From contig MU008160.1 of assembly GCA_010909165.1 (NCBI GenBank), positions 1,302,001 to 1,366,000 on the forward strand: a stretch of DNA of 64,000 bases, given 5' to 3'. How positions within the stretch are numbered: position 1 is the stretch's first letter; each line of letters opens with the position of its first letter. Below are positions 55,656 to 59,134 of the stretch, piece after piece. Both the position numbers and the translations under genes were made by a program. This DNA is from Anthoceros angustus (taxonomy: Eukaryota; Plantae; Anthocerotophyta). The notes beneath the pieces were generated by a model. It saw only the letters and a list, made by a program, of their open reading frames with translations, ran no database searches and was not told the DNA's origin.

Positions 55656-58600
55656 TCAATTACTGGACCCTCCTTCAAATTTTGTTAGTGTTTTCATCCG
55701 CGTAGATAGCACAGACAGGGTCGAAAAGATGAGCTTGCTCTGCACATGGCTCCTATCTCCAACTAAAAATTCATGAACTTCGTCTCCCTGCTCAATCCAA
55801 CTCTTTCCAGGCTTCTTCCACGCTCCTGCACTTGTTCTCAGCTTCTCCACCTTATCAGCGTCCTCCGGCATATTAGCCTGTCTGTACAACGTGGACATCA
55901 GAACATAAGGTGCTGCCTCCCTTGAATCCAGTTTCACCGCAGATTCGAAAGCACGGCGTCCACAATCTAGGTTACTGTAGTTTCGGCACGAGCCAAGTAT
56001 AGACAACCACATTGCTAGATCAGGTTCCATGGGCATGCCTGCGATAACGTCCTCAGCCTCTTTGAAGAGTCCTGCACGGCCAAGGAGGTCGACCAGATTT
56101 GCATAATGTTGTAGCCCAGGTGCAATGCTGTGATCTCCCATGGACTTGAAATACTGCAGGCCCTGATGCACCAGGCCTGCATGGCTACAAGATGTCAGAA
56201 CATGGTTGAAGGTCACTTCATCCGGCTTTGTCCCTGCATGAAGCATTTCCTCGAAACACTCCAAGCTGGTTTCGACTTCTGCTTGCCGGGCATACCCAGC
56301 GATTAACGAGTTCCATGATAGAACGTCAGGCTCAGCCAATGTGTCGAACAGCTGCTGAGCTTGCTTCATGCTCCCACATTTGCCATATGCTAGAATGAGA
56401 CTGCTGGCCAGAAGAGATCTCAACGGAAGCCCACTTTGAAGAAGGTCACGATGGACCTCGACGCACATGCTTAGAGCCCCCACACCGCTGGAGGCTTTCA
56501 ATATACAGAGAAATGTGGACTCATTTGGTACTACACCCTTCTTCTGCATTTGGCCATATAGTTGGATGGCTTCCTCACCTTGTCCTAGGTCAGCATACCC
56601 TGCGATTATGGCGTTCCACGATACAATACTGCGCTGGGACAATGCATCAAACACACTTCGCGCATCTACGAGGCTTCCAAATCTGGCGTACATGTGGATA
56701 AGAGTGTTGCCAACAAAAGTGTTCAATTCATGACCCATTTGGACAAGCTTGGCATGCAGTACTTTACCTCTGTGCAGTGATTCTACTTTCACTGCTTGCC
56801 AATTTATGTTTGACTCTTGCTCCATGGCGGCCATGCTAACACAAGCTTTTAGTATGCTTACAAATGTCCAAGTATCTGGCTGGAACCCTGCCTCCTCCAT
56901 ACGATCATAGAGTTCAAGAGCACGTGCACCTTGTTCTTGCTCCACATACCCCTCTATCAGTGCGTTCCATGACTCCACAGTGCAGTGGGTCTGGATTTCA
57001 AATACAGACTGGGCATCCTCCATACGACCACAGACTGCATACATACTAATTAGAGTGGTGGCGACGTAATCGTCTAACTCACAGCCATACATGAGAATCT
57101 GTGTATGAATGGCCTTACCCATCAGCAGGGCATCCATCTTCAGCAGTTGACCATTGACCAGTGTACCTTGCTCTGTGGTTGCCAAGCTGCCACAAGCTTT
57201 CAGGACACTGACAAAGATTCTATCATGTGGGCTGACGCTTTCCTCGTGCATTTGTTTGTACAACTGCAAAGCTTCTTTGTACTGCCCTTGTTGGACATAT
57301 CCTGCAATCATCCCATTCCATAACACAATGTCACGCTGACACAGCGTGTCAAAGACTTGCCGAGCTCGATCCATTTTTCCACATCTTGAATACATGTCCA
57401 CTAGAGTAGTCCCAACATACAGATCTGACTCGCATCCACAGGCTACTACGTCTGCATGTACACTCTTTCCCTCTTCCAGGTCCTGTAAGATGCCACAAGA
57501 TTTGAGCACACTAACAAACGTGTACTTGTTGGGGATGATACCTTCCTTTCTCATTCTCTTGTACACTTCAACAGCTTCCACATGTTGTCCATCCTTGGTG
57601 TACCCAGAGATAATAGCAGTCCATGAGAATGCTGTGCGCCGTGGCAACCTGTTGAAAACGTTGAGGGCATGTGGAAGGCTCCCGCATTTGACAAACATGT
57701 TCACTAGAGACTCACCCAAATAGCTGTTTGACTCAAATCCGTTCCTCATAACGCGAGCATGGACTTTCTTAGCCTCTGCCAGGGATCGTTTTTCAATACA
57801 TCCCTGCAGAAGGTAGCGGTAGATCTCAGTGTAGATCGCCAACCCCTGCTCCTCCATGAGCTGAAGCACGTCAAGTGCCTCCTCGAGTTTTCCTTCTTCA
57901 CACAAACTCTTCAGCTTCTGGGTGCCATCAGACACATCAACTTCCCTGCGCGATTCATGAACTGCTATCATTCAGCTTTAATAAGATGGCAATCAGGCAT
58001 ATTCTACCTCTGGTATCCCATAGCTGAGCCAGAAGTGACAGACTACAGCCAAACTCACCATTTGAGTGTGCTCCAACCCATTCGAGCGTAGCTAGCTGTG
58101 TCTCTACCCACGGAGGTTTCAGCGAATTATTAATCCACAGAGCAGCATTTGTTCTCTTGTGCCTAAAGTCGGGTTGCTGGGGATTTTTCTACAAGCAAAT
58201 CCGAGCACCCAAGTCAAACGTGGCACACTGTCAAATCCATGGAAACACAATGACAGAATACTACTACCTTGTACAGCCTATTATCCTTCCACTGAGAGGG
58301 ATCCAAGAAGAACTCCTCCCACAACACCTTCTGCTCCTCCCTCTTCACATCTTTGGGGGACGGCCCTTTTACTGCACACAACCAACATCCTTTGACTCCA
58401 CTTAAGTCTGCATGCTGAAACTTCACAACCAGGTTGTGCCAGTAAAAGCTCGGACAAACCTTTGATAGAGGCCACAGCCTTTAGTCTATGCTCAATTGAA
58501 TCGAGCTTGCTTTTCACCCAGCTCGGGTTGAGTTCGCTGTCCACCCATAGGCCCTCCTTTGTGACCTTGTTACGGAAGTCGGGAAAGTCCACAGTCCTCT

Positions 58601-59134
58601 AGAAACCCACAACAAGAGCCCATGTCAGGAGTAGCACAGGTAGAAAACGATGTCCAATTCCACAGCAGGAGGAAGGAGATGGAATTCCACCTTGCTTGAT
58701 CGGTTATCCCACCAGTCTAAAGGCTCCGAGAAGAAGTTCTTCCAGAGCCGTTCCACTTCCGTCGCCTCCTCCCCCTCCATTCCCTCAATTTCACCGTCAC
58801 TAGCAAATCCGCAGCAGACTGACTGGGCAGGAACGACTGCAAATATGAATAAGCGATGATCCCGTGAAGCAGCACTGACACTGGGGCCTGGTTGCAGCCA
58901 CTTAAGCCGCCACATCGCATCCCCATTCCTTGTGCTTGTGGCCTGTTTGAACAAAATGCAAGCAAGCGTCCACTGCACAGAAACTGCAACACCGAGCATG
59001 GTTCTCTCATGACAAGCGTCCTGCAGATGTTTGGTGAAGGCGGGATTAGCGAGAACTGAGGATGGGATAAGGAGCGGCGAAACCCGGTCGGCAATGTTTC
59101 GCCAGTATGACCGTTGGACGGAGACGAAGCGCAT
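55656..59134 (-). CDS. PLS-class PPR-E+ protein with two N-terminal OSB-type PDF motifs (5-exon model)
   Basis: Exons 59134-58691, 58598-58460, 58371-58268, 58188-58059 and 57961-55656; all GT-AG and phase-compatible. The PPR array ends KKPGKSWIE...FLVGDRSH; no DYW. Confidence 0.85.

Follow-up and report, generated by a model that had tools for sequence, protein, structure and literature searches.

Two OSB-type PDF motifs precede a DYW-less PLS-PPR array in a predicted gene of Anthoceros angustus

Introduction

The described parts of PPR editing factors are the PPR tract, the E1 and E2 motifs and the DYW domain, and these factors are studied both for their biology and as programmable RNA editors. 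Angiosperm PLS-PPR editing factors of the E+ type rely on a DYW deaminase supplied in trans. MORF proteins have been reported only from seed plants (PMC13386178). The PDF motif, ~50 residues long and marked by a Pro-Asp-Phe signature, belongs to the OSB proteins, and the PDF of AtOSB1 was reported to be sufficient for binding of single-stranded DNA (ssDNA) (PMC6963530). Here we analyse a 64-kb stretch of Anthoceros angustus DNA (contig MU008160.1, positions 1,302,001 to 1,366,000; hereafter the window), in which the minus strand between positions 55656 and 59134 is predicted to encode a single protein with two PDF motifs placed ahead of a PLS-PPR array. We refer to this gene as the PDF-PPR gene.

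We found no report linking PDF to PPR proteins in the searchable literature, which excludes Zaegel et al. 2006, where the motif was defined. A 2026 survey of editing factors across the kingdom, in which fusions of PPR with other domains are listed, makes no mention of OSB or PDF (PMC13386178), and a 2026 survey of 182 OSB genes makes no mention of PPR (PMC13393729).

Results

An initial annotation of the window had identified two repeats upstream of the PPR array as PDF motifs of OSB proteins, while allowing that they might fail against OSB profiles. Both repeats read in the DNA as they had been quoted. To this region, and to the other pieces of the six-frame translated window (2669 in all), we applied a PDF profile made from 32 motifs of OSB proteins only. 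Four pieces were significant, with E values from 1.7e-11 to 1.6e-5, and the fifth-best piece had an E value of 0.93. The four significant pieces lie on one strand, the minus strand, within ~700 nucleotides (nt), and first and second halves of the motif alternate there, beginning with a first half: the end of exon 1 matches profile positions 2-23 (E 3.6e-7), exon 2 positions 26-54 (E 3.8e-10), the end of exon 3 positions 3-22 (E 1.6e-5) and exon 4 (piece 57958-58188) positions 23-54 (E 1.7e-11). Jointly they span profile positions 2-54 twice, and four half-motif matches ordered in this way are far beyond chance. Thus, both motifs match a profile built from OSB proteins alone, and exactly four half-motif pieces of the window do so. 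Of the residues that stand out in an alignment of 73 PDF sequences, the first and the second motif (PDF1 and PDF2) each retain 8/8 invariant and 7/9 near-invariant ones.

The link to OSB proteins was reached by the route from the PPR exon to its PPR relatives, from these to PDF-bearing N-termini, and from the N-termini to OSB proteins. A search with the three-motif N-terminus of a Diphasiastrum protein (P0083:95-345) brought up proteins named as OSB1, OSB2 and OSB3, together with SSB-domain proteins of Marchantia, Riccia and others. The PDF pieces of the window score 6-10 bits more with a profile of PPR-linked PDFs than with the OSB profile, indicating that they belong to a PPR-linked subgroup of the same domain. 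A Pfam search with exons 1-4 gave no matches; PDF is not among the models of the Pfam copy used, and an intron divides each motif. The contiguous N-termini of Diphasiastrum proteins also gave nothing relevant in Pfam. Judged by profile matches and residue conservation, both repeats are true PDF motifs of the OSB type and are homologous to the ones that OSB proteins carry.

Direct inspection of the minus strand from 59500 to 55400 gave five exons of 444, 139, 104, 130 and 2306 nt separated by four canonical GT-AG introns, at the coordinates proposed in the initial annotation and joining the frame without a shift. Exon 1 (58691..59134) begins with the first ATG, at 59134, and would encode ~125 non-conserved N-terminal residues, a putative organelle presequence, followed by the first half of PDF1 (58691-58756). 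Intron 1 (58599..58690, 92 nt, phase 0) falls within PDF1 after ...DNRxxK, and exon 2 (58460..58598) resumes with the second half of PDF1 (58497-58598) and a linker. Intron 2 (58372..58459, 88 nt, phase 1) is placed by frame arithmetic alone, the relatives giving no independent support. Exon 3 (58268..58371) holds further linker and the first half of PDF2 (58268-58330), which is interrupted by intron 3 (58189..58267, 79 nt, phase 0) at the same residue at which intron 1 interrupts PDF1. Exon 4 (58059..58188) contains the second half of PDF2 (58084-58188) and the beginning of a linker toward the PPR array; intron 4 (57962..58058, 97 nt, phase 1) separates PDF2 from exon 5, the PPR exon.

Exon 1 ends in phase 0, exons 2 and 3 add up to 243 nt and exons 4 and 5 to 2436 nt, giving a predicted spliced frame of 1040 unbroken codons that ends with a stop codon at 55656-55658. 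All eight splice dinucleotides are canonical. None of the four intron lengths is divisible by 3, so that retention of any intron would break the frame, which only these exact splice sites preserve. The order encoded is ~125 N-terminal residues, two PDF motifs, 18 PPR motifs, E1, E2 and a 52-residue PG-box stub. The first 40 residues of the predicted protein include five arginines and lysines and two aspartates and glutamates, and the putative assignment of the N-terminal ~125 residues as an organelle targeting peptide is a guess based on composition.

The 771-residue PPR open reading frame (ORF) that the initial annotation had pointed to is present at 55656-57971 in the ORF list of the window. 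Pfam PPR families match the PPR exon with an E value of 4e-87, and together with a hand-made motif table they delineate an array of 18 motifs (56016..57923, minus strand) in the order S-L-S, four P1-L1-S1 triplets, then P2-L2-S2. On the same strand follow E1 (34 residues) and E2 (33 residues) at 55815..56015, delineated by hand and by the Pfam E_motif (38.3 bits; cutoff 27.3), and the 52-residue PG-box stub, the 'E+' motif of older naming, which together with the stop codon occupies 55656..55814. Motif lengths are canonical (P1-L1-S1 35/35/31, P2-L2-S2 35/36/32, E1 34, E2 33). Two L1 motifs (57072-57224 and 56721-56873, minus strand) have 51 residues rather than 35, the extra 16 being inserted behind the first helix, and similar L1 insertions are seen in two relatives (P0004 and P0017).

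A DYW profile made from 23 relatives matches the PPR exon at profile positions 2-42 only (33.9 bits). The deaminase core with its zinc-binding HxE and CxxC motifs is absent, and this profile found no further DYW piece in the whole 64-kb window. Since the core is missing, the protein would not be able to deaminate alone, and older naming would place it among the E+ type factors. The Pfam Eplus_motif, at 17.7 bits, stays below its cutoff of 24; the earlier label of a PLS-E+ PPR is nevertheless upheld by the canonical motif lengths, the E_motif score and the restricted DYW match. By its sequence, then, the C-terminal part is a DYW-less PLS-E+ PPR of canonical anatomy. A hand reading of the P and S motifs by the published code, which uses residue five and the last residue of each, gives roughly A-n-G-?-n-R-U-n-C-Y-n-G-U-n-U as the predicted target. 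The edited C would be expected four nucleotides after the S2-aligned base.

All sequence searches with the PDF-PPR gene were made exon by exon, and the collection of 5.8 billion proteins that was searched contains no protein of the source genome. The PPR exon retrieved ~4900 relatives with 30-46% identity, and the 120 best of these, a small sample, were used for counting the distribution of the PDF. PDF-like motifs lie ahead of the PPR array in 23 of the 120. Among these are 18 of 33 Diphasiastrum models, some with a DYW domain and some ending after E2/E+, one of 11 fern models and the single Calypogeia model; none of the 18 gymnosperm models has a PDF. Sphagnum models have a presequence, a PDF and then PPR motifs. 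The PDF thus also occurs on PPRs that bear their own DYW domain. In alignments to P0042 and P0017, the window gene has the same layout, with the PDFs between the presequence and the first PPR motif and a linker of ~30 residues. These comparisons of sequences indicate that presequence-PDF-PPR is a real architecture, of old origin and widespread among seedless plants. The suspicion that similar fusions exist unremarked elsewhere proved correct, given that Diphasiastrum, Sphagnum, Calypogeia and one fern carry this layout.

A phase-0 intron lies right after the lysine of ...DNRxxK in both PDFs of the window, in a Marchantia OSB gene (L004) and in a Calypogeia PDF-PPR gene (L005). The common residue and phase provide independent support for introns 1 and 3, and they further argue that the PDF exon pair passed as genomic DNA from one of these two kinds of gene to the other. 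Modelled with AlphaFold (pLDDT 94.6), a contiguous PDF comprises a helix, three short strands and a helix, and the model suggests that the module folds confidently by itself; the intron site maps to the loop between the first two short strands. The same stretch of the OSB PDF (survey positions 19-30) was reported as prone to insertions (2026 OSB survey, PMC13393729). In the relatives examined, such as Calypogeia, no intron separates the PPR array from the PDF that precedes it; in the window gene, intron 4 does so.

No solved structure resembling the PDF model was found with Foldseek against the PDB or by sequence search of the PDB, and a wide VIA search gave a best Z of 2.6. In a shape search of the ESM Atlas, the model retrieved one OSB cluster (TM 0.92) and three PPR/DYW clusters with 57-127 members (TM 0.88-0.91); the members of all four come from Streptophyta. 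After these plant clusters, the same search (model mbca102519ee0, from P0042:33-91) listed two clusters of tailed-phage hypothetical proteins of ~190 residues, which match over 56-57 residues at TM 0.74 and 0.67, as well as a Rad52/Rad22 cluster from bacteria at TM 0.46. A phage origin of the fold received no support from BFVD or PHROGs and remains an unverified lead.

Three other features of the window may be mentioned. A second PLS-type PPR ORF of 494 residues (50998-52482, minus strand) lies 3 kb downstream of the PDF-PPR gene; it has an E_motif of 50 bits and stops close to where the PG box begins, and the OSB-only profile found no PDF match in it. Upstream, a divergent ORF of 286 residues with no Pfam match (59460-60320, plus strand) begins at a distance of 326 bp from the start codon of the PDF-PPR gene, a spacing at which the two may share a promoter region. 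A Trp/Tyr-permease exon (31376-32587, minus strand) has its best named relatives in Sphagnum, Physcomitrium, Calypogeia and Marchantia, with only 53-57% identity, as would fit a lineage of bryophyte grade not represented in the protein collection.

Discussion

The explanation that we favour, with a probability of roughly 0.6 for the whole of it, is that the window contains an intact nuclear gene for an organelle-directed, DYW-less PLS-PPR factor that recognizes a site, and that its two OSB-type PDFs act as binders of single strands. The PPR tract would read ~15-18 nucleotides of an organellar transcript, and a DYW deaminase acting in trans would perform the chemistry, by analogy with angiosperm E+ factors. 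The two PDFs, located at the end of the protein that would face the 5′ side of the bound RNA, may bind single-stranded nucleic acid irrespective of sequence. If their ligand is RNA, they could strengthen binding or prevent the transcript from folding upstream of the PPR footprint. If it is DNA, they could hold the factor on ssDNA of the nucleoid or of the transcription bubble, where it would meet nascent transcripts. The evidence does not appear to separate these two versions. The initial annotation had likewise proposed a chimeric factor coupling recognition of RNA to binding of ssDNA or nucleoids, or a PDF reused for binding RNA or protein. Its components, namely the OSB-type PDFs, the DYW-less PLS-E+ PPR and the occurrence of the same fused layout in other seedless plants, have stood up; its functional reading, as ours, is a proposal.

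Several observations weigh against this explanation or parts of it. AtOSB1 and AtOSB2 were reported to prefer ssDNA over double-stranded DNA or RNA (PMC4166229), which weakens the version in which the PDFs bind RNA. Moss PPR56 edits in Escherichia coli with all but 14 of the residues upstream of its first PPR removed, and N-terminal PPRs add only weakly to specificity (PMC10482289). The PPR56 result implies that N-terminal extensions are dispensable for the core reaction. Furthermore, the closest PPR relatives of the window gene (L001-L003, from Logan SRR33208241, 42-46% identity), all of which end right after E2/E+, have no PDF exon upstream in the DNA examined, which spanned 6 kb each at L001 and L002 and 1 kb at L003; this PPR subfamily can thus do without the module.

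A broader proposal would be that in seedless plants PDFs tether PLS-PPR factors to ssDNA at transcription bubbles, R-loops or nucleoids, so that sites are recognized on nascent RNA, a MORF-like helper role that MORF proteins would later have taken over. The distributions of PDF-PPR proteins and MORF are complementary in our small sample; nonetheless, we regard this scenario as speculative and rather improbable.

Alternatively, the PDFs may be protein-protein adaptors, which recruit a partner such as the deaminase acting in trans, OSB proteins or further proteins of the nucleoid, or which bring about oligomerization of the PPR factor. AtOSB2 was reported to be a tetramer (PMC6963530), the PPR-linked PDFs form a recognizable subgroup, as seen from their gain of 6-10 bits over the OSB profile, and a factor devoid of DYW needs partners. 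However, the invariant aromatic and basic residues held in common with OSB proteins are all kept, which fits the same class of ligand, and recruitment of a deaminase cannot be the general role of the PDF, because the motif is also found on PPRs with a DYW domain of their own. We therefore consider an adaptor role unlikely.

It could also be argued that the fusion is an artefact of annotation, and that the locus comprises two transcription units, one for a PDF-only protein (exons 1-4 with read-through into intron 4) and another for a PPR protein translated from the ATG at 57971. The frame of exon 4 is indeed open through intron 4 up to a stop at ~57955-57957, the 771-residue ORF has its own ATG, and short PDF-only models, such as Ceratodon P0178, exist in databases. 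On the other hand, exons 4 and 5, each aligned alone to the contiguous relatives P0042 and P0017, are collinear and abut within 0-2 residues: on P0042 exon 4 ends at ~residue 98 and exon 5 begins at ~residue 100, and on P0017 both positions are 52. In Calypogeia and in four relatives called as ORFs (P0017, P0059, P0091 and P0062), a single uninterrupted ORF covers the PPR array together with the second half of the PDF. A PPR protein initiated at 57971 would have only ~12-16 residues ahead of its first motif, too few to hold a presequence. The junction of exons 4 and 5 (58059/57961) is thus predicted from homology and frame logic, and two separate units seem distinctly improbable. Quite unlikely, too, is that the gene, though intact in sequence, is a silent or decaying recent duplicate from the large and rapidly turning-over PPR family, an architecture without current function at this locus, since its 1040 codons run without a stop over five exons with eight canonical splice dinucleotides and all invariant PDF residues and the canonical PPR motif lengths are kept.

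Returning to the site-recognition factor with single-strand-binding PDFs, its broader meaning would be as follows. The PDF is an extra conserved module on many PPR factors of mosses, liverworts, lycophytes, ferns and the source genome. Its occurrence on so many factors, with the ssDNA binding credited to it in OSB proteins, and its absence from the recent surveys suggest that the editing machinery of plants without MORF has a layer not yet studied. Judged by its sequence, the window copy is notable for being intact and having two PDFs and no DYW domain, and these same properties, two modules and no catalytic domain of its own, make it a good test case.

Among known systems, the OSB proteins (AtOSB1-4 and Marchantia OSB P0168) share with the window gene the PDF of ~50 residues, its invariant residues, the position of the phase-0 intron, the organellar context and the occurrence of the PDF in 1-3 (up to 5) copies. 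They differ in having a central SSB/OB-fold-like domain (PF00436) with the PDFs C-terminal, whereas the PDFs of the window lie between presequence and PPR array. Pfam found neither PF00436 nor any other OB-fold in any exon of the window gene, and with its PDFs N-terminal to a PPR array the predicted protein is therefore not an OSB protein. Angiosperm E+ PLS-PPR editing factors, as generally known, have the same PLS triplets, P2-L2-S2, E1, E2 and PG-box stub and likewise no deaminase core; unlike the window gene, which comes from a seedless plant, they are without PDF and work with MORF proteins. Maize PPR4, an RRM-PPR protein (cited in PMC9459714), also has an accessory single-stranded nucleic-acid-binding domain N-terminal to its PPR tract, but the domain is of the RRM fold and PPR4 is a P-class splicing factor of a seed plant. 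Further counterparts are the PDF-PPR proteins of Diphasiastrum, Sphagnum and Calypogeia (for example P0012, P0042, P0086, P0075 and P0156), with a presequence, 1-3 PDFs, a linker of ~30 residues and a PLS array, and two relatives, P0086 and P0010, also end after E2/E+. Many of these proteins carry a full DYW domain, however, and in those examined the PPR array is not separated from the preceding PDF by an intron; at only 35-41% identity over the PPR part, they are not orthologues of the window gene, and share with it the architecture of PDFs placed ahead of a PLS array.

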